NCBI GenBank assembly: GCA_964247055.1
Contig: OZ176052.1
Coordinates: 558,001 to 622,000 of the forward strand
Length of the DNA: 64,000 bases
Reading direction: 5' to 3'
DNA from: Paragordius varius
Taxonomy: Eukaryota; Animalia; Nematomorpha
In this document: in pieces, positions 7,571 to 49,814 of the stretch
Position numbering within the stretch: position 1 is the first letter of the stretch
How the letters are laid out: each line of letters opens with the position of its first letter
Notes under the pieces: model-generated
Database searches by the model: none
Told to the model about the DNA's origin: nothing
The model's input: only the letters and a program-made list of their open reading frames with translations
Position numbers and translations under genes: made by a program

Positions 7571-10500
7571 TTAGCATAAATCAAGGTTAAATAATGATTG
7601 TTTCATTTTTAAGAAAAAAAATATTTGCCATTATATATATATATATATATTGTATTATACAAAAAACCTAGATTAGACTAATTTTACTATACATATTTTA
7701 AACCACAAAAGTTACGTTTAATAATCATAAATAAATGTAAATTTTTAAAAATTTTTAACATTTTTGCATTAAGATTTTTAGATTTTAATTTCAATTTTTT
7801 TAGATTTTTGAAATTTCTTAACATTTTTGCATTAAGATTTTGAAATTTTTGAAAATTTTAATTTTTTTAGTTGAAAATTTTAATATTTTGATATTACCTC
7901 ATACTTATGTTCATTGCATTGAGCTATGATATGTCTTTTACTCAACATATCATGATAAAGGATTTGACCAGATTCAGACCCACTAACAATCCAAAAATTC
8001 TTAGAATTCGATTTTTTAGCTAAGGGAAACCAACACAGTGAAGATATACGATGATAAGGTTTTTCCTAATATCAAATAAAATTTTTTAGAAAAATTTATT
8101 TGTAAAAAAAAGGTTTAAAATTAAAATATGATATATAACTTATTATGTGAAGTCTGAATTCTAAAAATGATTCATTTTTAAAATGTTATTTATTAAATAA
8201 ATCATATTTTTGATTTCTTATTTAAACTTTAAAATATTTAGAAATATTTTTTTTAATAAAAAAAACCGGTAAAATTATGTGAAAAAGTATAAATTCTGTG
8301 AATTATTCGTCAAATTTTTATAAAAAATGTAAGTTATTAAATCATTCATATTTTTGAATTTTTATTTTTTAAAAAAACATCTTATATTTTCCTAAAAAAA
8401 TAAAATTTTGAAAATTTTATTTGTAAAAAAAGTAAATTAAAATTTGATAAATATAGTATAAATTATGTAAATTATTCGCCAAATTTTTATGGAAAAAATA
8501 ATTTATTTTTAAAAAACAATATTATGTGAAAAATATACGATAAAGTTTTTCCTAAAAAAATAAAATTTAGAATATTTTTTTTAATAAAAAAACCAGTAAT
8601 ATTATGTGAAAAAGTATATATTCTGTGAATTATTCGTCAAATTTTTATGAAATAATTTATTTTTAAAAAACAAAGTGAAAGATATACGATAAAGTTTTTC
8701 CTAAGTTAAAAATAAAAAGTATAAATTAGTGAATTATTAATCCAGTTTTAATAAAAAAAATAATTCATTTTTATAATGCAAGTTATTAAATTAATTCATA
8801 TTTTTGGATTCTTATTTTTATAAAAAAACATCTTATATTTTCCCCAAAAAGCATATCATATTTAATAAATAAAATTTAAAATATTTTTTTTATAAAAAAA
8901 AAGTGTAAAATTAAAATATGATAAATAGTATATATAAATCATGTGAATTATAAGTCAAATTTTTATAAAAAAATAATCATTTTTGAATGTTAGTTATTAA
9001 AGCATTGATATTTTTAGATTCTTACTATAAAAAATAATTAATTTTAAAATGTATAATTAAATTAATTCATTGATATTTTTGAATTCTTATTTTTATAAAA
9101 AAACATCTTATATATATCATTAAATAGTTAATACGTTCAAATTATAAGGAGGGTCTATTAAAAATATATAACACTAAAAAGAAAAATTAAGTTTAAAAAA
9201 TACTCTTTAAATAAAAAACCTGCTCTCTATTCACTAATTGTGGGTACCCCTTAATACTTTATATGGACAAAACGTAAAAATATAAAGACACAGATATTTT
9301 TTTTTCAAAAGGTAACCCCATACTTTTTATAAACTAAATTTTTCCCTATAACAAACTATTTAATTAAAAAGAGTGAAATATATATTGATTGTGTTACCAA
9401 TTAACATTTCTATATTATATACTTTGTTGTTTAAAACAATCAGTTTTATTAAAAAAAGCAAATTTAAAAAAAGTATGGGGTTATCTTTTAGTAAAAAAAA
9501 TATTTGTCTTTATATTTTTACACGTTTTGTCTGTATGTTCTGTAATAGGAATGATTACTGTAAAAATTGGAATTATACGGATGGACAAAATGGAAAAAAA
9601 TATAAAGACAAATATTTTTTTCTAAAAGAAAACCATACTTTTTTAGAATATAACTAATACTCATTGTTTAAAATGGTAAAAAATTAAATAGAAATTTATA
9701 TTACTAAAACAATCAATTCTATATATATATATAACAATAGTAATTAAATAGCTTATATGGGAAAAATAAAGGTTTGAAAAAATTATATGATTATCTTTTA
9801 AAAAAAATATTTGTCTTTAAATTTTTAGGTTAATATAAAATTTTTACTGTAATTTCTATATATTTATTTGATATATTTAAGAATTTTTTTAAAAAAATAC
9901 TTGAGCATTTATATCTCCAGACATCCAACGTAACATTTTTGATTTTTTCACGTCCCAAATCTATAATTGTTGTTAATATTGGTTAAACAGAAAAAAAGTA
10001 AAAAAAAGTAATTTTTACAAAAAAAATTAATTTTTTTAAAATAAAATTATTTTTAAAAGTTAAAAGCATTAGAAAAAAAATCTTTCTATTTTAAGTTATA
10101 AAATATAGTTTAAGGGTTTGTTTTAACCCTACATTGGACAATTAAATCCCCTAAGATTTATATATTAAAAGAAGCTAATAACATAAAGTGTTAATTTCAC
10201 TAAAAATGACATTGTATTACTAACTCTTTAGGTATATATATACCATTAATTCAAACTCTTTAATTTACAATTCAAATTCACCCTTGAACAATTCAAATTC
10301 ACCCTTGAACAATTCAAATTCACCCTAAAAATAAATTATGTTTTTAGGGCTAATATAATTCGAAATATATTTTTATGGCACATAGTTTATTATTTTTTCA
10401 GTATTATACTAATATTTTTTTATGAAAACATATAGGTAATTTTAAACTTTTAAAAACACATAATTCATTTTAGAGTGGGTGAATTTGAATTGTTCAAGGG

Positions 10501-18720: not shown

Positions 18721-21276
18721 ATGATTTTGAAAGATTCTTTGTTTTTGGTGCCTATAGATTCGAATTCGGAGGAGCGCATGGTTTTACTGTTAAAGTCCAA
18801 TTATAAAAATGAAACTCTAATCACTAAATTATTTCCCACCGGTCAAATTGACAACAAATCTGTTTTTAAAGGCGAAGGAAACCATTCAAATATTATAGTT
18901 TGCAAACATCACATTAAAGGTTTCGTTTTTGTTTAAAAGTATTTAGATGTTAAATTAACACAACCGAATTTAAGGTTTAAATTTACAGTTTTCCTCACCA
19001 AAAAACAGAACACCCACAAAACAATCAATAATGACTCATTATCATTAACTACTCCAGTAAATTAAGATTTTATATTATTTTTTTATATTTTAAAATTTTT
19101 ATAATATCTTTTTAATTACCTTTAGTTTATTATATATTGTGAAAAAATAATCAAAATTATAGTCAATTAGGAGATTATTCAATTAACCATTTTTTTTTAA
19201 TTAACTCACATCTATAATATATATTATATATTAATCAATATATTTATTGTACTATATTGTATGCTTTATTGATTTTTGGGAGTTTTTACCTGTATTTATT
19301 TTTTCTACCGTTTTTATCATTTCCTTATCTTTTTTATTTTATATATATTTTTTAGGTTAAAATTAATTATATAAAATTATTTTTATACGTTATAAAAATG
19401 GTTACTGATTTTCAAAATTATTTTTTAACACTTTTTCCCCATATTTTATAGTGTGAAATTTTACACTTTTATGTTTTAGATATAAAAAAATCATAAAGTT
19501 AAGTGTATATTTTCTTTTACACTGTCATAAAAATATATACCATTTACAGTTCAAATTCACCCTTAAACAATTCAAATTCACCCTTAAACAATTCAAATTC
19601 ACCCTTGAACAATTCAAATTCACCCTCGAACAATTCAAATTCACCCTCAAATTAATAACATATTTTTTAAGATTAAAAATTACCTATATTTTAATATATT
19701 TTTAAAAAATAAAATTTTGTTTTAAATTAAAATAATACTGAAAAAAATAATTAATTATGCCATAAAGATTTATTTTATATTAATAATGAGTTATATTAGT
19801 TCGAAAACACATAATTTATTTTTAGGGTGAATTTGAATTGTTCGAGGGTGAATTTGAATTGTTTAAGGGTGAATTTGAATTGTTCGAGGGTGAATTTGAA
19901 TTGTTTAAGGGTGAATTTGAACTGTAAATGGTATAGTATAAATATGGCAGTTAATAAAGAAATTAAAAAATTGAATTATATATATATGTTTATTATATTT
20001 TTAACTATTTTTATAAAGATTTAAATTAAAATTAATATTGAATATTTATTAGTAATAATATAATAAGTAGATATTTGATATATATTTTAATCAATTTATC
20101 TCTTATATAGCTTTTTACAGACTTTATCCATATTAATTTTTTAAGGTGGTCTTGAATATCTTATAAAATGAGATTTTACAATTTTTTTGTAATTTTTTTT
20201 GAATTTTTTACTTATAAAACTGTTCGAAATCTTATGGATAATAATTCTAAAAAAAGCTTATAATTTTTACAAAGATATATCATAAAGATTTTAAGATTTC
20301 AAGATTTTAACCATTTTCTAAGATTTTTTATTGGGTAAATTTTATGTTAGCATTTTTTGAAAACTTTTAGGCTTAATGGTATTTTTAGACGTTAGAGAAA
20401 TGTATGGTATTAATTTATAAAATGTGTTGAATTTTAGTCAAAAAATTTGAATTATATATTTTATTTTTATGTGTCAAATTTTAAACATTTTTAACTTTTT
20501 ATCATCAAATATCATTCAGCCTAAAACTTTGAATAATATTGTAATAAGTTACGAAATGTGTTAAATTTTGGTCAAAAATTTTATTTTTATGTGTTAAATT
20601 TTAACCATTTTTAACTTATTATCCTCTAATAAAATTCCTTTTATAGTTTTTTCTATTTCTTATATATAGGAGCGTAGAACTTTAGATTTCTGGTTTTCTG
20701 ACAATAATAATCGAAATTCTTCACAAAACAATGTTAAAAACTCGGCCTCAAAAAATCAAATTAATCAATTTTTAGTTTCGTTATTTAACCCGACCACGTT
20801 CCCACGAAGTAGTATTTTATATTTTAAATAAAAATTACACTTTAATTCACAACATTAAAGTTTTCTTTTTTTGTAGGAAAATATTTATATTTAAAGTTTT
20901 TTTTAATCTAAAATAAGCTATTTTAGGGGATTATTTTTTGATTTTTAGACAATTTGTCTCATGATTCAAGAGTATATTATAAATTTTTATTTTGCAGTAA
21001 AAATTGAAATTTTACGGGACACTTGAAAATATAAAGAAAATTTTTTTTAAAGACAACCAACCATACTTTTTTCAACTTATCCTATAAAAAATATTTAAAC
21101 ACAATCGTAAAATATTAATTTTTACCAATTTACATCTCTATTGCATTCTTTTCAGTTTAAAAATCAGTTATATTTTATAAAAAAGAATTAAAAAGTATGG
21201 TGGTTATCTTTTTAAAAAATATTTGTCTTTATATTTTTTCGTTTTGTCTTTCCGTATAATTTCAATTTATACTGTA

Positions 21277-21323
<47 letters not shown>

Positions 21324-24300
21324 TTTACAAAATTTCACCCTTAAACAATTCAATACACTCACGAACAATTTAAATTCACCCTCAAACAATTCAAATCCAC
21401 CCTCAAATAAAACAAATGTTTTTCAAGATTAAAAATTAATAAAATTTCTATTTTTAAATTAAAATAACACTGAAGAATTAATAATATATTCCATAAAGAT
21501 ATATTTCATATTAATAATGAGTTATATTAGCTGCCCGAAAACACATAACTTATTTTTAAGGTGAATTTGAATTGTTCAAGGGTGTAAATTTGAACTCTTC
21601 AAGGGTGATTTGAATTGTTAAAGGGTGAATTTGAACTCTAAGGGTGAATTTGAACTCTAAGGGTGAATTTGAATTGTTAGGGTGAATTTGAATTGTTCAA
21701 GGGTATAAATTTGAACTGTTCAAGGAGGTGAATTTGAATTGTTTAAGGGGGTGAATTTGAATTCTTCAAGGGTGAATTTGAATTTTGTTCAAGGGTGAAT
21801 TTGAATTGTTCAAGGGTCAGTTAATTTGAATTGAACTTAAATGGTAAATATATATTTTAGATTATACCGGATTTCTAATTCGTCTACTTAAATTGTTGGA
21901 ACAATTCAATGGTTTAGATAAGATTTTAGTCACATTTTCTACAACACCATCATCAGTTGTTTGCAGTAAAGAACCAACAGGAGTAGTTTATGATTGTAGG
22001 AATATTTCATTAGTCTCAGGACTACATCCTATAGATGCAAATTCCCCCCAATCTAAAAATGGAAATGTTCTAGAAACTAATTTAAATTTACCCTCTACAG
22101 AACAAATTATTACTAAAAGTATATATAGATGATTTATTTAAACAATTTTTTTGAACAAAAATATGGGTTCCAAAATATGCATAGAGTGTAAATTATGAAA
22201 ACAAATTTCAAACATTAAAACGCATTCATTTATTAAACTAATATAATCATATTTTTGATGTTTCAATTTTTTACCTCTACTAAAACAGCTATCTTTAATG
22301 AAAACTTTGGCATTAATTTATTACATTGTTTTTAAGGTAAGATCAAAAGCGTTCGCGAAAAAATGGTAATAACTTTCATTAAATTGGAAATATTAATCTT
22401 TATTTAATCCCTAAAATTAGAAAAGATTGATTTTTTTTGTTTTATACATTTATAAAATTTTATATTTTTATTAAATTTATATTTAATATTTTAGAATCTT
22501 GTATATCAGAACAAACAACAACCACGACAGTTTTGGAAAAAGAAGTCCTCAGTATTTTGGAATCTGTTTTCCCGGCATCGTTAACCACTGAAAAATTAAT
22601 AAAGTTTAATAATTTTTTTTTATTTTAACTATAAACTGTAAAATTTTTGACATAATATTTTAAAATGTAATAATGAATTCATACAGGGAGAACTTTTAGT
22701 AAATTAAGACAATTTTTTATCAAAAAAAGACAACCATACTTTTTAAATCTTAATTTTTTTTAATTTAATCACCTTTTTTCTAAATATAATTCATTGTGGT
22801 GCAATTTAAAACAATGATATTTATATTAGAAAAAAAACGCACGTTTTAAAGAGGAACAACAATTTTTGTAGAAAAGAAATATTTGACTATTTTCAGGTTT
22901 GTCCATATATTTCAATTTTTACTGTATATGAAGATAAAATCATTTTCCTTAGTTTACGAAGCCTAAAATTATCTTTAACACTCAACTTTTATTTCGTGTT
23001 TTTTTATAAAATAAACTTTATATAGAAATTAGAAACGCTCAATAATATACCTAAGCTAGCTAACTGGCTAATTAATTTTTTATAGGCCCAGTTTTGTTAT
23101 ATAAATAATTATCAATTAATCCATATAATCAGTATAAATTGAAATTATACGGAAGGACAAAAGGTAAAAATATAAAGACAAATATTTTTTTTTTCAAAAG
23201 ACAACAACCATTCTTTTTTTTAACCTTAATATTACTTATATAAATAAAAATATTACTTGCCTATAAAATATAAAATTGATGGAGTTTTCTATTTACATCT
23301 TTTTTTGAGACATAATTTTAGATTAAAACAATGAGTTTTATTGAAATAATCAAGGCTTCAAAAAGTATATGGTTAGTTAATTGTCTTTCTTTTACTAAAA
23401 AATATTTGTCTTTATATTTTGACATTTTGTCCTTCCGTAAATTTTACTGTATATTATCAAGGTTTTAAAAAGTATGGTTAGTTGTCCCTCTTTTACTAAA
23501 AAATATTTGTCTTTATATTTTTACATTTTGTCCTACCGTATAATTTCAATTTTTACTCTTTAGATTAAAAATTTTTTTTTATTTTACTTAAAAAACAATA
23601 CAGATATATACAAGATTCAAGTCATATACTCCGTTCACATTCAGAATCGCTCGAAACTCTAAGCCTAATAATTCAAACTATTTTACAAAACCTTTCTACC
23701 TCAACAAATTCCGTAGTTACAAAAAACGATAATAATTTCAATAATTTTAATAATCTAAATAATATTGATGATAATATAAATAATAATGAACAAATTTTAA
23801 TTAAACAACTTTCTGACGGTTCTTGGATACGTTTTGATGAAGCCTTAAACTCTAATTCTACGAATAATACAGTAAAAGTTAAAATTATACTATGGACAAA
23901 ACGTAAAAATATAAAGACAAATGTTTTTTAACTAAAAAAGATTTTTTTTAAATCTTGACTTTTTTTAATATACTTTAATGTTTTTGGAAATTAGGTTAGA
24001 TATAATATATGTTAAAATTATACGAACAAAAAGTTAAAATATATAAAGACAAATGTTTTTTTTATATCCTAACTAAGAATAGTTTAAATATAAGAAATAG
24101 ATATATTTTAATATTTTGAGATTTAAATATGATAAATAGATATAGAAAGTTAAAATTATACCATGGACAAAACGTAAAAATATAAAGACAAATGTTTTTT
24201 TTCAAAACAATCTAAAAATCTTGATTGTTTAAATCCTGATTTTTATACGTTAACGTTTTGGGACTTTAAATATAACAAATAGATAAGTAAAAGTTAAAAT

Positions 24301-27300
24301 TGTACGAATAAAAGTTAATAATATAAAGACAAATATTTATTTTCCCAAAAGATTCTTAAAATCTTGACTGTTATCCTGATTTTTTATGATATAATCTAAC
24401 GTTAAATTCTTTAAATATACGAAATAGATATAATGAAAGTTGAAATTATACGGATAAAAGGTATAAAAGGACAAATATTTTTTTCTAAAAGGCAAACATA
24501 ATACTCTTGATTTATTTCAATATAACTCATTGTTTTAAATGGCAAGCTGTGAAATAGAGATTATTACTAAAACAATTACTCCATATTTTACAATTGTATT
24601 TAAATAGCTTATCTTATAAGAAAGTTAAGGTTAAAAAAGTATGGGGATGTCTTTTAGATAAATATATTTGTCTTTTTAATTTTTCGTTTTGTCCATAGTA
24701 TAATTTCTTCAATTTTTACTGTAATTTATATGTGAAACATTAAGGCTCACAAAGGTAAGTATTATAGTGTCTTTTAGAAAAAAAACATATGTCTTTATAT
24801 TTTTAATTTTTACGTTTTGTCCATAAATTTTATTGAAAAAACATACTCACTCTATTTTACACATTTAAAAATTGTAATTCAATATAGTGTATGTTGCAAA
24901 TTATCAGAGTTTCTAAAAGTATGGTTATAAAAAAATTTGTCTTTATAATTATTACGTTTGTAATCAATCTGTTTAATAATTTTTACTGTAATAATATACT
25001 CTAATTTAAACATTTCACAATTGTAATTATATAGTTATATAGTTAATTATCAGGGTTTCTAAAAGTATGGTTGTCTTTTAGAAAAAAAATAGTTGTCTTT
25101 TTAATTTCGCGTTTTGTCCATAGTAAAATTTCAATTTTTATTATTTAATTTACACATTTCACAATTGTAATTATGTAGTTATATAGCAAATTATCAGATT
25201 TTAAAAAAGTATGGTTGTCTTTTAGGAAAAATATTTGTCTTTTTAATTTTTACGATTTCCTAGTAAAAAATTAATTTTAACTGTAATAATATACTCACTC
25301 CATTTTACATTTCACAATCGTAATTATATATATAGTTATATAACAATTATCAAGGTTTCTAAAAGTATTTTTAAAAAACATATTGGTCTTTTAAAATTTT
25401 TAAGTTTTATTCATAGTATAATTTCTTCAATTTTTACTGTATTAATATACTCACTCTAATTTACGCATTCCACATTTCACAATCGTAATTATATATTACT
25501 GTATGTAGCAAATTATCAGGGTTTCTAAAAGTATGGGGTTGTCTCTTAGATTAAAATACTATTTTACATTTCACAATCGTAATTATATATATACTGTATG
25601 TAGCAAATCATAAGGGTTTCTAAAAGTATGGTTTCTTTTAAAAAATATTTGTCTTTTTAATTTTTTACGTTTGTAATCAATCTGTAATCGCTAATTTTTA
25701 CTGCAATAATATACTTTTACATTTCACAATTGTAATTATATATAGTTATATAGCAGATTATCAGAGTTTTAAAAAAATATGGTTGTCTTTTAAAAAAAAA
25801 TATTTGGCTTTTAATTTCAATTTTTACTGTTTGTTATATTGATTTTAATTTTTATTGTAATTGATGTGTTAAAAATTATGGTATTACTAAAGTATGGTTG
25901 TCTTTTAGAAAAATACATATTTGTCTTTATAATTTTCACGTTTTCTTAGTAAAATTTCAATTTTTACTGTAATTTTACTTTGATATTGATTTTAAGGTTG
26001 ATATTTATGAAAAAAACACTGTGGATTTGAAAGGAAATATTAAAATTGAACCCAAAAATCTTAATTATTTTAATGGCAATAATGATAAAACTAAAAATGA
26101 TAAAAATTCTGAAAAATATGGTTCTTGGAAAACGGGAAATTCCGATGAAAGGATTCAAAGTTTGGCTGATTGTGTGAAAGAAAGTGCTTTTTTCGTTGAC
26201 AATTGCGACAATGCATTAACGAATCAAAAAAGTTAGTTTTTTTGCCTTTTTTTAAAAAGTTTTTTAAAATTTAGGAATTTTTAAACGATTTCTAAAAGAT
26301 TATTTCGTAAAAATTAAGGTTTTTTTTTAATATTTTTTGAAATATTACGAAATAACATAAAAATATAAAGACATATACTATTAAAATAATTTAATTACAA
26401 TTGGATAATACATAAATGCATGTGTTATAAATATACAACTTTATATCCTACTTTATAATTTGAAACAATGAGTTATCATTAAAAAAATTAAGATTCAAAA
26501 AATATGTAGTTGTTTTTTTAAAAAAATATTTATATTTATATTCTTACGTTTGTTCGTATAATTTCAATTTTTACTGTATTTGATATTTTTTTAAAATTAT
26601 ACATATATTCCTAAACAATTTTCCTGCAGATATATTTATAGGTATTACTTTTTTTGTTTTTTAAAATTTTTTTTTCGAAACAATAGTGTTGACGAATAAG
26701 TTAATGTTGTAGAATAATATAATTACTCACAAAATATATCATGTAATTATTATAAATATTTTGAATGATTTAAATAATTGCATCTAATTTAATTAAATTT
26801 TTTTCCAATTTTTTTCGGGTTTTTCTCCTAAAAAAACAATCCACATAATTTGTAAGTTTAAGCTAAAATATAATAATCTTTAAAAATATGAAATACAAAA
26901 CAAAATTAATATTTTTTTTATTACATTACCTAATAAATCTTTTCTTAAATTATAATATAATAAATAATTAATTTGAAAGATATGAATCTTATATATATTC
27001 TTTTTAAAATTATAATATACCATTTGCACTTTAAGTTGGTCCTTTGACTTTTTTGTTTTGTTTTTAATTTTAACCTATTTTCTATTATTTAACATAAATT
27101 TTAAATCGATATCAACTTTTAATGTTTGAGAAACCGTATATCTTTATAATTTCTTAAAATAATTTTAGATATTTATAAGATTTTAACATGGAATGAAAAA
27201 ATATATAAGTTATCTGGGTTAATAATTAAAATTTTTCATTAAAAACATTTAAAAGTTAATAATTTTGTTTAATTGAAAAAAATAGTTTGAAACAAAAAAG

Positions 27301-30300
27301 TGGTTTTTCAATAAAAAAAAGTTTATTTTTAAATGGATAAATATGTATAATAAATAAAGAATTAGGTTAATAAATAATAAAATAAAAAAATAAATGCAAA
27401 AATTATGGTTAAATTAAATTTAAAAAATTTTAAGGACCAACTTGAAATGTTTAAGGACACTCTTGAAGTGCAAATGGTATACAAAAAAATAAATATTTTC
27501 TTATTATAATTGCTTAATAAATCTTTTTTTAAATTATAATATAATAAAGAATTAACTTAAAAGATATAAAACTTATAAATTCTTTTTAATATATCGCTTT
27601 TTAAATTATTATAAATTTAAAATTACTTTATAATTTTTTTTGTATTTCTTACCAGCTAAATCGCAAAGTTTTGACGTGAATGATTTTAAACCGCTTATTG
27701 GGATTATTACATGGTTATATTGTGAAAAAATTGCAGTTGACTCTATGATGGATCAAAAACCTATCAATATTTTCAAGTTTAAAACGCAAGGTTTTGTAAA
27801 ATTTTAAACATAAATCATTTAAGAATTTATAGTTTTTTTTAGAAAATTATAATTTTTTTAGAAAATTTAAAATATATAATATGTAAAAATGATTTTTTTT
27901 TGTTTAATGCTAACTATAACTTTAATATTTTTTATTAATTTTTAATAAATCTAAACTTTTTGAGTATTTTATTTGATGGTTTTTTTGTTTTCTGCTATAA
28001 AAGAGTTTTAATTAAACTTTTTTTATACTAAGGGGACTATTAGGTTGAACACGGGTAACCTTTTTTGCATAAAAATTACTTTTTTTATAATTTTCAAAAG
28101 AATCAATATTTTTAAGGATTTTGTATTGGAAAGTTCTCGATCGATATATATTTGAGGAACATTTTTTTTATTCCTCCTTTCAAAATATACCAGTTAAATT
28201 TTTATATCCTTAAAATGATGTTTTTAAGTAAGTTTTTCCATATTTTTTTATGTTTTAATTTGTCAGAAAAAAAATGATTTTTATATGTTTTTACGGTAAA
28301 ATTGAAAATGACCACAAGTTTAAATATAAATTTTGTCCATAAATATTTGATTTAATGCATTTTTTTATTATAAAATTAAAAGATTTTAATTATCTTTACA
28401 GTAAAATTAATGATAACCACAAGTTTTTATTACTAAGTATTGTCTGTCCATAAATGTTTGATTTAAAGTAGTTTTATATTATACTTTATAAAATTAAAAG
28501 ATTTTTTTTTATGTCTTTACGGTAAAATTAATGAGAACCATTAAGTTTTAATAACTAAATATATATTGTCTGTCCATAAATATTGTCTGTCTATAAATGT
28601 TTGATTTAATTCAGCAGTTTTTTATTATTTTTTTTATAAAATTAAAAGATTTAATTTAAAGTATTTTTTAATTATTTCTCAAAAGATTTTAATTTTAACA
28701 TTTTTATTGTCTTTTAATAAAGGTAACCATCATTTATACACCTTGGGACGTATAGGGGAACATACGGTAGTTAGTATTAAACTTTCGACTTTGGGTAAAT
28801 CTCGGCCAGCTTTAATTTCCTCTACGAATGCCATAACACGCTTACTTGGTGAGAATTTGACTTTTTATAGTTAAAAAAGTTGATTAATATTTATAAATAT
28901 TGAGAATATTTTAAGTTTAAATGATGATTTTGATATAAAATATTATTTTTTAATTTTTTTTTAAAAAAAAAGAAAAATATCCATATATATTGGGGAATAT
29001 GAGCTTTTTTTATATTTTGTTATAAAATTGACCTTTTTTTGTTAGTGAAAAAAATGAAAATTCATAAATTTTGATTATTTTAAGCTTAATTTATTAGGGT
29101 TTATATAAAATATAGGTTTTGACCTTTTTTTGTTAGTGAAAAAAAGATAAATATTCATAAATATTGAGCATATTTTAAGTTTACTTTAATAGGATTTATG
29201 TAAAATATTTTGACGTTTGATATGTTTCTCTATTTAATACTCTAAAATTGATTTTATATTCTAGGGTAATTTCGTACACTCTAAATTGTATATATATAAT
29301 CCTAAAAATGTTGTTTTTAAATAGTGTTTGTACCTTATAAATTTTAGATTGTTTTAATGAATGGATTTTGTTTGCAATAGCAGAAAAATTTTAATTACAA
29401 TAATATGGTTTTGTTTTGGATGTTTTCATTTTAACACTAATATAATTTTAATTTTCCTGAACATTGTTTTATAACTCTAAATTTTTGAATATCTTTAAAT
29501 AATGGTGATTTTTTAATCTAATTTGGCAAATATTGAACAAATATTTGTAGGAAATTTTTTATTACAAAATATAGTTTCTTTAGTTAGTATTTTAATGATT
29601 TTTCAACTCTATTTTAGAAAAATCTAATCTATTATAACATTCAATTAACACAATATAATTTCTGCTATTGTTTTATATTACAGTAAAAATTGAATTATAT
29701 ATGGACAAAACGTAAAAATATTAAGAAAAAAATTTTTTTATTAAAAGACAATAATACTTTTTCAAACCTAAAAAATATTTATTAACAATTGTGTAATACA
29801 TATTTGATTGTGTTACCAATACATCTCTATTTTACTTACAGTTCAAAACAATGAGTTTAATTTAATATTCATATATAAAAGAGGGTTGTTTTTTAGAAAA
29901 GAATAAATTTTTACGTTTTGTCCGCATATAATTTCAATTTTTACTGTATGTGTGTGAATTCACAGTTTTCTAATTTTCTATGTATTTTTAAACGTTTTTT
30001 TGCAATTTATATTTAAAAACGCGAAAATTTTGTTTTTTAGCATAGTTTAATTTTAAAACATCTAAATTTTTTATTGTTTAAATGTATATATATTAATTTT
30101 CTAACTTTAAAAAACATTTTTTTGCTAATAAATTTTGTTTTTATTGTTAGGTACCTTTCCATCCATAAAACATATAATATGTGTTGGGGTCGGTTATGGC
30201 GTCAATTATCTCAAGGATTATAGGTTATTTTAGACGTCTTTTCTTTTTTCTTTGATTTATATGTAAAATTTTAGTTTTTAGTTTAAAATATGAATATATA

Positions 30301-33300
30301 CCATTTACAGTTCAAATTCACCCTTAAACAATTCAAATTCACCCTCGAACAATGTAAATTCACCCTAAAAATAAATTATGTGTTTTTCGAACCAATATAA
30401 CTCATTATTAATATGAAATATATGTTTATGGTATAGTTTATTATTTTTTCAGTATTATTTTAATTTTAAACAAAATTTCATTTTTTTAATATGTCTAAAA
30501 AATATAGGTAATTTTTAATCTTAAAAAACATATTTTATTTGAGGGTGAATTTGAATTGTTCAAGGTGAAATTGAATTATAAATGGTATTGTATGCATTTT
30601 AATAGTCGCTTATTTTACACTATAGTAGGGTAATTTGCAATATAATACAGTAATGTATGGTAGAAAAAAGAAAGGAAATACTTGTTTATTCAACCTTAGT
30701 TTTCTTTTTTTCCATACACTACTGTTTCGTTGCAAATTGTCACCCTACTATAGTAACATGAAATAAGCAACCATTAAAATGCATACTGTATATTATATTA
30801 TAAATTTTTGGTTTATAATAATAAGAAAGTCAGTCTATGTTTCACATTGTACTTTATAAATTTCTTAGGGGAAGTTTAAAAAACTTGATGTAATTATCTT
30901 TTATCTTAATATACCATTTACAATTCAAATTCACCCTTAAACAAATTAAATTCACTCTAAAAATAAATTATGTGTTTTCGGGCTAATAGAATTCACATTA
31001 TTATTAATACGAAATATTTTATCTTTATGGCGCAAATAGCTTATTATTTTTTCAGTATTATTTTATTTTTAAGCAAAATTTCATTTTTTTAATATGTAAA
31101 AAAATTTAGATAATTTTACTCATAAAATACATATAATTTATTTTAAGATGAATTTGAATCTGTGGAAGGGTTAATTAGAATAAGAGTGAAATTGAATTAT
31201 TGTAGGATAAATTTAAATTTTTCTTCTAGGGTAAACAGTATTGTGTTTTGATTTGTTTTTCAAGGGTGAATTGGATTTGTTGTTCAAGAGTGTATTTGAA
31301 TTCTCGATCAAGGCTGAATTTGAATTGTTCAAGGGTTAATTTTTATTGTTTAATGGTGATTTTGAATTGATGTTCAAGGGTGAATTTGAATTATTGTTTA
31401 AATTTCAATTATTGTTCAAGGGTGAATTTAAATTGTTGTTCAAGGGTGAATTTAAATTGTTGTTCAAGGGTGAATTTGAATCGTTGTTTAAGGGTGAATT
31501 TGAATTTTTATTTTAGGAATTCGAATTCTTGCTCAATGGTGAATTTGAATTTCTATTGTTTAAGGGTGAATTTGAATTGTTCAAGGGTGAATTTGAATTG
31601 TTCAAGGGTGAATTCGGATTGTTTAAGGGTGAATTTGAATTATTGTCCAAGTGTGAATTTCAATTTTTGTTCAAGGGTGAATTTGAATTTTTTAAGGATG
31701 AAAATAAATTATTATTCAAGGGTGAATTTGAAGGGTGAATATGAATTGTTTAAGGGCGAATTTGAATATTATTGTTTAAGGGTGAATTTGAATTGATGTT
31801 TAAGGATGAATTTGAATTATTATTGTTCAAGGGTGAATTTAAATTGTTGTGTGAATTTCAATTCTTGTTCAAGGGTGAAATCAAATTATTTTTTAAGGGT
31901 GAATTTGAATTTTTGTTCAAGGGTGACTTTGATATGTTTAAGGGTGAATTTCAAGGGTGAATTTGAATTATTATTGTTCAAGGGTGAATTAGAATTAGTG
32001 TTCAAGGGCAAATTTGGATTGTTCAACGGTGAATTTGAATTTTTGTTTAATGATGAATTTAAATTATTGTTTAAGGGTTAATTTGATTTTTTTTTCAAGG
32101 GTGAATTTTTAGTTCAAGGAATTTAAAGTTTAATTGGTATATATATTATGTTTTTATATTTTGCATTTTTAGACGCAAATTTAAACTGGGCGACATTGTA
32201 GTTTCTACGGACAATCCGGGGTGTCCTTACATGTACTTGGCATTAAATCAAAATTTTGAATTGTTACCCAAACATAATAAATCTCCTCAATATTCTCAAA
32301 TGCCACGAAATAATCATAATAATAATAATTGCAATCTAAATGAAAATGTTTGTTCCAATTATCACATGAAAAATATTAAGCTTTATAAACCGACTGCTAA
32401 AAGTTAGTTTAGTTTTATAGTTATTTAGGTTATTTTGAATATAGAAATTTTTTTAGATTCTATAGTTTTATTGATTTGGGTTATTTTGAATATTTAAAAA
32501 AAAATTTTGTTGAAAACATAATTTTGAATTAAAATATATTCAGATTTTTTTATGTAAAAAAAGATATTTATAAACATTTGTGATTATTGATTAAGATTGT
32601 TTTAATTTTAAACTTTGAGATTGTAATATTTTTTTAACTTTTTATTGTATTATTTTACATTTTTTAGCTACATATTAAGTAAACATTTTGAATTAAAAGA
32701 TTTTAGTTTTTTGTAAAATGAAGAGATATTTATGATTTGTCATAATTGATTTTAAGATTGTTTTAATTTTAAACTTTGAGATTGTAATGATTTTTTATTT
32801 ACATTTTTTTATTAACAATTTTTTAGCTACAATTTAAGAAAACATAACTTTAGAATTAAAATATATTCAGATTTTTTTGTGTAAAAGAGATATTTATAAA
32901 GATTTGAGATTGTCAAATTATTTTTTCTTTGAACTTTTAAGATTGTAATTATTTTTTATTTGCAATTTTTAGCTACAGTTTAAAAAAACATAATTTTGAA
33001 TTGAAATATATTTAGATTTTTTGTGTGAAATAAAGAGATATTTATAAAGATTTGAGATTATTGATTTTAAGATTTTGAACTTTTAAGATTGTAATTATTT
33101 TTTATAATTTTATTTAAAATTCATTGAAGAGACACTTTTAATTATTTATAAACTATATTAGGGTTAAATATAATTTTTAATTAAAAATATTGATAATTTC
33201 TATATTTCCCGTATGATATAAATGGACTTATATATACCATTATGCATTTCATTGGTTACTTATTTTCACATACTTTTTATAGATGTATAGTTTTTTACGT

Positions 33301-47500: not shown

Positions 47501-49814
47501 AACCTCATAGCCCACTTATTTCCACAAGACATTACCGCGCACCTGAAGTTATATTAGGTGATTTTATTGAAAGACCAATCGAGCCTGCCTTAATCCTTAA
47601 AAATATATTCCATTTTTCAGTTAAAAACAACATTTTTTTATCAGCATACCTTTCTACCACAGAACATAAACTTTGTAAACTAATGTTTTAAAAAGTTTTT
47701 TTGCTTAAAATTAAATTATCATACCATATTCTTCTCTATTAGGAAAACTTAAATTTGTTACAGTTTTGTAACTTTTACTCAAACAAACAGATGATTCTAA
47801 AATTAATAATATTATAATAAAGAGTTTTGTTAAAATGTAATTTGAATACCCCCCAAAGTTAATTATTTACATTTTTTTAACCATAATATATTAGCATGGC
47901 GAAAAAGTTTGAGATGAGGATTTTTTACAATTTTCATTTTTAATTTTTTTTTGGATCACATGCCTAAAAAGGCCAAAGAAAGCATATTTTTAAATTTGGT
48001 CCAATACTAAAATACTTTTTAAGATATTTTAAATGGCTCTGGGGTATAAAACTACCCTAAATCGTAATGATGAAGTGTGGATGAAAAAATAATTATGTAA
48101 CTGTATTATATAGATTTGGGTTGGTTCCAAAGCTGTGACATGTGGAGTATAGGAGCCATTTTGTTTGAATTATATCGTGGTTTTACATTGTTTCAAGTAT
48201 GTTTCATATATAATCCATTTTAACAGTAAACTGAAAAATATCCGTTTTCCTGAATTATTAAGCAATTTTAAATACAGGAAAAACTGAAATTATACGGACA
48301 AATACTTTTAAAATCCTTATTGATTTTTTAAATTTTAACTGATTGTTTTAAACTCCACAACGTATAAAATAGAGATGTATATTGGTAACACAATCAATTA
48401 TAATATAACTGTAATTAAATAATTTATTTATCAAAAATTTAGGATCAAGAAAGTAGGATTGTCCTTTGAAAACAAATATTTATGTATATTCGATTTCTAA
48501 ACATATTTACAGTAAAATTGAATTGAAATTATACGGACAAAACTAACAATTATAAGGACAAATTTTTTTTCAACCTTGATTTATCCTATAAGAAACATTT
48601 TACACTAGTAAAATACATAAATAATTTGTATCTTCATTTTACACTTTGCATTTAAAACAAGCAGTTATATATTTTAAAAAATAAATATTTAAAAAATATA
48701 GTAGTTTGTCTTTTAGAAAAAATTATTTGTCTAATTTTACGTTTTGTCCGTATAGTTTCATCTTTTATATTGTATCATTTTTTTTGATAAAATAGACTCA
48801 CGATGATAGAGAACATTTGGCTATAATGGAACGTGTCTTAGGTTCTGTCCCAACACATATGCTTCAAAAATCAAAGTAAGTCAATAAAAACTGAAATTAT
48901 ACGGACAAAACGTAAAAAATATAAAGACAAATATTTTTTACTAAAATACAACCAACCATACTTTTTAAACCATTATTTATGTTAATGTAACTCTCATTGT
49001 TTGAAATGACAAAGTGTGAAATGAAGATATATAATACTAAGACATTCAATTCTATATTTTGCAATTGTAATTAAGTAGCTTATATGGGAAACATTTAGGT
49101 TTAAAAAGTATGGTTGTCTTTTAGAAAATATATATTTGTCTACATATTTTTACGTTTTGTCCGTATAATTTAAATTGTTACTGTAATTTTTATATGAGAT
49201 TTTTAATGCCTTTTTTTTTGTTTATTTTTAGAGCCCAATTTATCAAAGATGGTGAATTAGATTTCACAGAAAATGGGCCCATGATACAATACGTTCACAA
49301 ACATTGTAAACCATTGAAGGTATTATGGAAAATAAATTTTACTTTAATGAAATTTTTAAACCATAATATTTCCAGTAAAAATTACATTTTAAAGACCAAA
49401 CATAATAAAAAGTGACTACATCTTTTCTATAAAGAATACCATATTGATTTTTTTGTGCATTGTAATAAATATATAATTATTTCAACTTTTATTGAGTGTG
49501 TTAGCATCCCATATTCCTTTTTTTTTCGTTATCCGAAACGATAATATAATGTAATTAAAATTCAAGTTTAAAAAATATATGGATGCCGTTATAAAAAATT
49601 ATTAATGTTAGTCTTTTTGCGTTAAGTCTTCTTTATAGAGCTTAATTTTTACTTAAACATTTCCTCATAATTTATGTAGGATTACATGTTGGCTCGTTCA
49701 GAAAAACACGCCCAGCTATATAATCTCATGTCTCAACTTTTGGAATATGATCCATACGAAAGATTAACTAGCTTCGAAGCTCTTAGACATCCCTTTTTTA
49801 TATCCAAAAATTAA
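41548..49814 (+). CDS. CLK: CDC-like (LAMMER) dual-specificity kinase, CLK/Doa family, 12 exons, about 386 aa
   Basis: Exons: 41548-41640 (tentative first exon), 42921-43017, 43188-43251, 43861-43989, 45633-45723, 46382-46457, 46954-47048, 47428-47557, 48114-48196, 48796-48875, 49232-49319, 49680-49814. All are phase-compatible. Motifs: [95 protein letters not shown]. Confidence 0.93.
41730..42006. mobile_element. MITE family B
   Basis: ta|cagtaaaaactgaaattatgcggacaaaacg ... aatttttactg|ta. Confidence 0.85.
42539..42713. repeat. Near-perfect 175-bp hairpin (about 70-bp arms), probable MITE
   Basis: taagtatacattgctagaaagttat..ttgccaa..aaatacaacaaagggca / tgccctttgttgtattt..ttggcaa..ataactttctagcaatgtatactta. 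Confidence 0.85.
43561..43852. mobile_element. MITE family B ending 8 nt before a CLK acceptor
   Basis: ta|cagtaaaaactgaaattatacggac ... gtccgtataattgtgatttttattg|ta ttttag|exon. Confidence 0.85.
44010..44293. mobile_element. MITE family A
   Basis: ta|ccatttacaattcaaattcaccc ... gaactgtaaatgg|ta. Confidence 0.85.
45258..45575. repeat. About 320-bp foldback insert in a CLK intron
   Basis: tctaccag..atgtatcctt..ttatcaaaa..ttggtaaagaatgg / ccattctttaccaa..ttttgataa..aaggatacat..ctggtag. Confidence 0.75.
45736..46035. mobile_element. MITE family B starting 12 nt after a CLK donor
   Basis: ta|cagtaaaaattgaaattagactatggacaaaacg ... tttactg|ta. Confidence 0.85.
48510..48772. mobile_element. MITE family B
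   Basis: ta|cagtaaaattgaattgaaattatacggac ... gtccgtatagtttcatcttttatattg|ta. Confidence 0.75.
48882..49183. mobile_element. MITE family B making up about 85% of CLK intron 48876-49231
   Basis: gtaagt|caataaaaactgaaattatacggac ... gtccgtataatttaaattgttactg|ta. Confidence 0.85.

Follow-up and report, generated by a model that had tools for sequence, protein, structure and literature searches.

A transposon terminus as the candidate donor of a predicted lineage-specific intron in a hairworm winged-helix gene

Intron gain in animals is rare and poorly documented. Introners, that is, transposon-derived introns, were reportedly described by Huff, Zilberman and Roy in 2016. Rushforth and Anderson are said to have found in 1996 that Tc1 is spliced out of C. 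elegans pre-mRNAs, while Henriet and colleagues, in work cited in PMC11282704, reportedly described in 2019 the largely non-GT/AG introns of Fritillaria borealis that derive from miniature inverted-repeat transposable elements (MITEs). Nested MITE insertions were reportedly the subject of work by Jiang and Wessler in 2001. Introners and transposon-derived introns were also treated by Gozashti et al. 2022 (PMC9860276) and Gozashti et al. 2025 (PMC12130899), and the large survey (PMC9860276) placed introners in just two animal groups. Exonic Tc1-type elements are excised by SOS splicing, whose junctions are variable and rarely GU-AG (Zhao et al. 2025, PMC12779559); the same paper (PMC12779559) discussed a spliceosomal back-up route and speculated that Tc1 ends have evolved splice sites. 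Here, we analysed a stretch of 64,000 nucleotides from the hairworm Paragordius varius (contig OZ176052.1, positions 558,001 to 622,000; hereafter the window, from whose first letter positions are counted). It carries, on the + strand, a gene for a conserved animal winged-helix and PNP-like protein (HTH_69 and PNP_UDP-like, about 580 amino acids). An earlier note on this DNA had proposed that a MITE landed in a coding linker of the gene and created an intron there by means of its own GT. The locus combines an undivided exon in the relative Gordionus as outgroup state, conserved neighbouring introns, a putative transposon-supplied donor and apparent later growth by insertions.

The evidence for a MITE-supplied donor comes from the end of exon A (23604..23871). 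The last part of the winged-helix domain, IKQLSDGSWIRFDE, lies in this exon and matches IRQLEDQSWIRIND in Gordionus; nine linker codons follow. The translation of 23605-23871 is stop-free, passes through IKQLSDGSWIRFDEALNSNSTNNT and terminates in ...GSWIRFDEALNSNSTNNT. At the DNA level the exon ends ACG AAT AAT ACA/GTAAAAG (a slash marks a boundary), with GTAAAAGT after ACA. A TA at 23868..23869 constitutes the left target-site duplication and is followed by the MITE terminus CAGTAAAA, the final two bases of the exon, CA, being bases 1-2 of the MITE. The putative 5′ splice site GT at 23872..23873 (ACA/GTAAAAGT, phase 0) thus corresponds to bases 3-4 of the terminus. Only two GTs, at 23819 and 23831, lie between the GSWIR motif and the MITE, both in phase 1, and they were ruled out as donors because the conserved SWIR(F/I)(D/N) wing would be deleted. 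The subsequent GTs (23872, 23878, 23903 and 23923) are all within the MITE, and 23872 is the first one in phase 0, just as the earlier note had stated, along with the exon end, the TA and the family terminus at 23870, all of which we found in the sequence. All in-frame GT-AG models that retained the conserved SWIRFDE wing had their donor GT inside the MITE. Among the in-frame and stop-free candidates, the pair with the best signals was 23872 with 25996, in phase 0, and these signals resembled those of the other sites of the gene (donors GTAGTA, GTTTAA, GTTAGT, GTTTTG and GTAAGA; T-rich acceptors ending in AG).

The intron predicted between exons A and B comprises 2,125 nt. A profile scan assigned all of it to the MITE family, with the exception of one TA and the 25 nt preceding the acceptor, in agreement with what had been claimed about its content. 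Specifically, a composite MITE array (23870..25969, termini CAGTAAAAG...TTTTTACTG) is followed by the right TA target-site duplication (25970..25971) and by a non-MITE remnant of 25 nt (25972..25996) with a putative branch region and the acceptor TTTTAAG/G. Taken on its own, 25969-25996 is also a GT-AG unit of 28 nt (GTAATTTT...TTTTAAG), made up of the final G of the MITE, its TA duplication and the remnant. The idea that a single MITE fills the intron had to be abandoned, since the array is composed of half units around one full copy. It begins with four or five left halves (starts at 23870, 24011, 24141 and 24285), continues with a complete copy at 24431-24721 and closes with about ten right halves, whose ends lie at 24833, 24988, 25143, 25283, 25439, 25703 (double), 25829 and 25969; each half measures about 140 nt. 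The units are 77-88% identical to the family consensus, a divergence about that of free copies, and a genome-wide search found the array nowhere else. All half-units are broken at one central point, at consensus position about 146-150, which suggests a preferred self-insertion site at the MITE centre. The array looks like the product of repeated insertion into the centre of the preceding element, and the unequal counts of left and right halves imply that losses or tandem duplication would also be needed. In the RNA fold prediction, the first 150 nt of the intron paired with the last 150 nt through 99 pairs, base 1 reaching base 2096, and the minimum free energy was -396 versus -355 for shuffles.

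The terminus in question belongs to an abundant family. A 21-mer terminus pattern had 38 matches in the window versus 0.16 expected, and CAGTAAAAGTTAAAATTATAC at 23870 matched it exactly. Canonical copies, both in the window and at ten other contig sites, measure 277-304 bp and are bounded as TA/CAGTAAAAA...TTTTTACTG/TA; most of the copies checked (five in the window and 13 on other contigs) have TA on both sides. The consensus of 295 bp carries the termini CAGTAAAAATTGAAATTATAC and its reverse complement. A profile built from five copies gave matches on both strands, with 99 distinct ones in 264 kb, equivalent to 8% of the DNA, and 3,724 first-look candidates were counted genome-wide. Copies share 76-95% identity with the consensus. 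Judged by its TA duplication, terminal inverted repeats, small size, non-coding content and high copy number, the family is a Tc1/mariner-type (Stowaway-like) MITE. The 37 kb orthologous locus of Gordionus contained no copy of it.

To place the intron in time, the gene was compared with its orthologues. A protein search with the last exon as query gave Gordionus sp. m RMFG-2023 XP_065320284.1 as the best relative, and this protein and the window are colinear between about 18721 and 35647. In Gordionus, a single exon (amino acids 234-307) runs from K/HIKQKYE through SWIRINDFTT...ILKKRST and spans the MITE site uninterrupted. It is flanked by an upstream intron in phase 2 and a downstream intron in phase 1, the same phases as those of introns W and Y in Paragordius. 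Intron W (22604..23603) contains three MITE-family copies and matches its counterpart in place and phase (K/Y here, K/H in Gordionus): its boundary at 23603/23604 is in phase 2, AA/A, exactly as in Gordionus. Intron Y (26232..27655) is in phase 1, joining 26231/26232 to 27656 as A/CT, and is the counterpart of the single phase-1 linker intron in Gordionus and other animals; with the shared D(V/Y)N(D/N)(F/Y)(K/N)P motif as the reference point, intron Y and the Gordionus downstream intron are five codons apart. Since the flanking introns agree in place and phase, exon A and exon B (25997..26231) take the place of one Gordionus exon. The nematode Aphelenchoides, the cestode Schistocephalus and the scorpion Centruroides each have one phase-1 linker intron, 17-20 codons before IAIIT and 5-8 codons past the wing Arg, and the beetle Tribolium has no intron in the linker. 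None of these five animals, Gordionus included, has a phase-0 linker intron. The check that the earlier note had called for, whether orthologues share an intron at this position, thus gave no phase-0 intron in the hairworm, nematode, cestode, scorpion and beetle compared, and because of this absence the predicted phase-0 MITE intron is lineage-specific.

These comparisons also bear on the older linker intron. At the Gordionus locus (L016 22324-22547) it lies 29 codons past the wing Arg, and the preceding RINDFT still resembles nematode RVNNFA. The Gordionus donor looks as though it had moved 3′-ward, exonising about 70 nt. In the simplest history, the old phase-1 intron would persist as intron Y, with its donor already shifted 3′-ward in the hairworm lineage, and the phase-0 MITE intron would be an addition in the Paragordius lineage.

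Altogether, the best reading of the locus, and in our view a somewhat probable one, is a lineage-specific intron gain through a MITE-supplied donor. A Tc1/mariner-type MITE would have landed on a TA within the linker, a poorly conserved part of one coding exon; this ancestral exon would have comprised the winged-helix wing and the linker, and Gordionus still has it in one piece. Because the element begins CA/GTAAAA, with a potential phase-0 5′ splice site at bases 3-4, the transcript could have been rescued. The host TTTTAAG/G, 27 nt past the far terminus, would have been used as the acceptor, making the new intron, which would later have grown from about 0.3 to 2.1 kb as further half and whole elements were added at the element centre. 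We infer both the splicing at 23872 with 25996 and the descent of exon B from the 3′ part of the old exon. The proposal that the MITE created the intron was thus supported by the origin of the donor GT and by the absence of the intron from orthologues; it was weakened by the empty site, as explained below. Likewise, the proposed insertion into a coding linker stood in that the Gordionus exon is undivided there, and lacked support in that the similarity of exon B to that linker was not significant.

Exon B has 235 nt, starts VDIYEKN, enters in phase 0 and exits in phase 1 with the donor A/GTTAGT. Its frame-specific coding score, 0.20 bits per codon, was above those of all 53 control open reading frames and level with the weaker known exons, and its 3′ half shows a GC peak of 0.36, like the peaks at known exons. 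The first half had a coding score near zero. A word search with exon B returned no match, and no paralogues of exon A or exon B were found in the genome, where exon B is unique. When the alignment was anchored at the intron, DNCDNALTNQK of exon B aligned with DNIEDTILKKR of Gordionus (p about 0.03 in a post hoc test). Neither the tail of exon A nor the translation read through the empty site was significantly similar to the Gordionus linker. A duplication of the exon A end as the source of exon B was also considered and rejected, as the homology test was not significant.

Several observations weigh against an intron gain of this kind. In unanchored tests, exon B showed no significant similarity to the Gordionus linker. 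The predicted linker is 105 amino acids long versus 22-37 in other animals, although N-rich insertions occur throughout this protein. In distant animals, a linker intron, of phase 1, is found at a distance of just 6-8 codons from the position of the MITE. The runs labelled as possible RNA contained none of the words of the stretch. In the 264 kb scanned, this locus alone, 1 of 92 MITE termini, adjoins a real exon end. Finally, if 23870-25971 is deleted, the 26 nt that remain between AAT and GTT put the frame out by one base, as had been noted for the removal of the MITE and one TA, and therefore a later indel must be assumed. The remnant of 25 nt may plausibly have lost one base once it was intronic, given its T-runs and the age of the family; otherwise the site would have had a different history. 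Two such histories were rejected. An older micro-intron struck by the MITE would not fit, as a GT is missing from the empty site and CAGTA, which should then be duplicated, is not found at the left junction, and elimination of the TA-bounded segment at the DNA level would leave an out-of-frame exon without a GT.

The recurrence scan covered the 92 termini with an intact GT in the 264 kb, each checked for an adjoining long open frame, a procedure that is noisy without annotation. The top hit other than our locus, L022, was rejected as a MITE-made intron: it is short and of the usual kind, and its own donor precedes the MITE by 45 nt. There (8895-9141; G000:C3:650895-651141, minus strand), a receptor-like exon (...VSFVGLTGLVKFDEHGGNVIHRLKISNVV) precedes a short intron with a GTAATT donor and a MITE inside, providing a contrast case. 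A second putative donor at a MITE end was found in the IMPAD1 exon (G000:C3:716061-716654), which terminates GAA TTA CA/GTAAAAAT at a MITE-family terminus; the intron that follows contains, besides a full MITE, a terminal fragment and, on its 3′ side, about 100 nt that do not belong to a MITE. At 49373, an open frame of 83 codons ends CA/GTAAAAATTAC outside any MITE-family copy. Donors of the GTAAAA type may be frequent in this genome. Because only 1 of the 92 termini adjoins a real exon end, the family is probably not a specialised introner but an ordinary MITE, with a donor provided by it now and then.

A rather unlikely alternative is that the donor of an existing intron was replaced. An old phase-1 intron would have stretched from close to the 3′ boundary of exon A as far as exon C (27656..27790, the start of the PNP-like domain, KSQSFDVNDFKPLIGIITWLYCEKIAVDSMM), with MITEs accumulating inside; exon B would have been recruited from this intron, and a MITE terminus would have taken over from a lost donor, so that the intron was split and not created by the MITE. 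The ancient linker introns of scorpion, nematode and cestode, 5-8 codons past the wing Arg and thus near the MITE site, agree with this history, as do the lack of significant homology between exon B and Gordionus and the near-zero coding score of its first half. Moreover, an acceptor at 26033 would give an exon B′ of 198 nt, a symmetric phase 1-1 cassette. However, the donor would have had to change from phase 1 to phase 0 jointly with the rise of an exon of length 1 mod 3, and a 78-codon open frame would have had to emerge in intron DNA of 20% GC. The Gordionus exon already extends past the ancient donor position, intron Y shares its phase with a Gordionus intron five codons apart, and no non-MITE intron sequence separates exon A from the MITE, all of which argue against this history.

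SOS splicing may enter the history of the locus in two ways. It is quite improbable, in our estimate, that the array represents a fixed exonic transposon whose presence in a dispensable linker was first tolerated thanks to SOS splicing, the spliceosome taking over later by way of the GT in its terminus. According to the fold model, the terminal hairpin would bring the two ends of the 2.1 kb intron to within an effective distance of about 30 nt, and, if this reading were true, SOS splicing would be a nursery of new introns in this MITE-laden genome. The chance is small that the array is still an exonic transposon removed by the hairpin-triggered AKAP17A-CAAP1-RTCB system, and not (or not only) by the spliceosome; that system makes its cuts within paired terminal repeats or close to them and leaves small indels behind. 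Such removal would dispense with the frame logic of GT-AG pairs and would be favoured by the 99 predicted outer-arm pairs, by the better rescue of Tc1 insertions in poorly conserved regions (PMC12779559) and by homologues of CAAP1 (G000:C3:9724963-9725082, 38 bits) and RtcB (G000:C6:4252771-4262260, five exons matched) in the genome; AKAP17A was not searched for. On the other hand, a good GT...AG pair exists in the right phases, the heterogeneous and mostly out-of-frame products of SOS splicing would be a poor permanent solution for a conserved gene, and intronic Tc1 copies in C. elegans are not SOS-spliced (PMC12779559).

We consider it very doubtful that exon B is skipped, the MITE-internal phase-1 donor AAC/GTAAAAAT at 23903 being joined to exon C with ten MITE-derived codons exonised. 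The phases would fit, the linker would have 37 amino acids, equal to that of Gordionus, and the number of introns would be the same as in the relatives, with a single ancestral phase-1 intron retained. Nonetheless, this donor would face competition from an equally good GT 31 nt upstream, at 23872, whose use would cause a frameshift with exon C, and the open frame, coding score, GC peak and phases of exon B would all have to be coincidental. Lastly, a gene broken by the insertion and now decaying as a pseudogene, to which the silence of the possible RNA runs would correspond, is hardly credible because all exons are intact: the twelve homology-supported exons are open and colinear with Gordionus in searches run exon by exon, separately, even though the family copies have diverged 5-24% from their consensus.

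Two further observations concern the same gene. Just before the exon A acceptor, the open frame at 23569-23603 encodes LKKQYR, resembling the exonic IKQKYE of Gordionus, and a MITE end lies 45 nt upstream; because of this resemblance, the exon A acceptor seems to have shifted about 21 nt downstream in the Paragordius lineage. In addition, tandem satellites in introns of the gene (19457-20024 and 31200-32100) give spurious long open frames (FKGEFEL... and RVNLNC...).

Compared with the described systems, the preferred reading, an intron gained through a MITE-supplied donor, shares with introners a non-autonomous DNA transposon, bearing inverted repeats at its ends and flanked by a target-site duplication, that is removed from coding sequence as an intron, one end of the element giving a splice signal. 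It differs from them in that the element supplies the donor alone: since the TA duplication is unable to yield an AG, a host AG 27 nt away would serve as the acceptor, at the cost of about eight codons. Also unlike introners, most copies of this family lie in introns or between genes, and the host belongs to the Nematomorpha, an animal group. With Tc1 in C. elegans the element has in common the Tc1/mariner type, the TA target, the CAGT terminus and cryptic 5′ sites located within the inverted repeat or close to it, whereas the Tc1 cases are fresh mutant alleles with heterogeneous products and the insertion described here is old, fixed in a conserved gene and grown to 2.1 kb. Like the substrates of SOS splicing, it is an exonic DNA transposon whose terminal repeats are predicted to pair, in a genome with CAAP1 and RtcB homologues; unlike them, it offers what is, by its sequence, a clean GT-AG pair in the right phase. 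As in Fritillaria, MITE insertions would act as introns in an animal genome, in this case with canonical boundaries. The run of left halves followed by a run of right halves, split at the centre and with the outermost arms pairing, recalls nested MITEs, from which the unequal counts set it apart. The locus is a plausible animal case of a transposon-made intron. If the junction is true, a genome with tens of thousands of TA/CA/GTAAAA elements could serve well for studying, in an animal, the conversion of exonic transposons into introns, and the same system could address whether SOS splicing contributes to intron birth.

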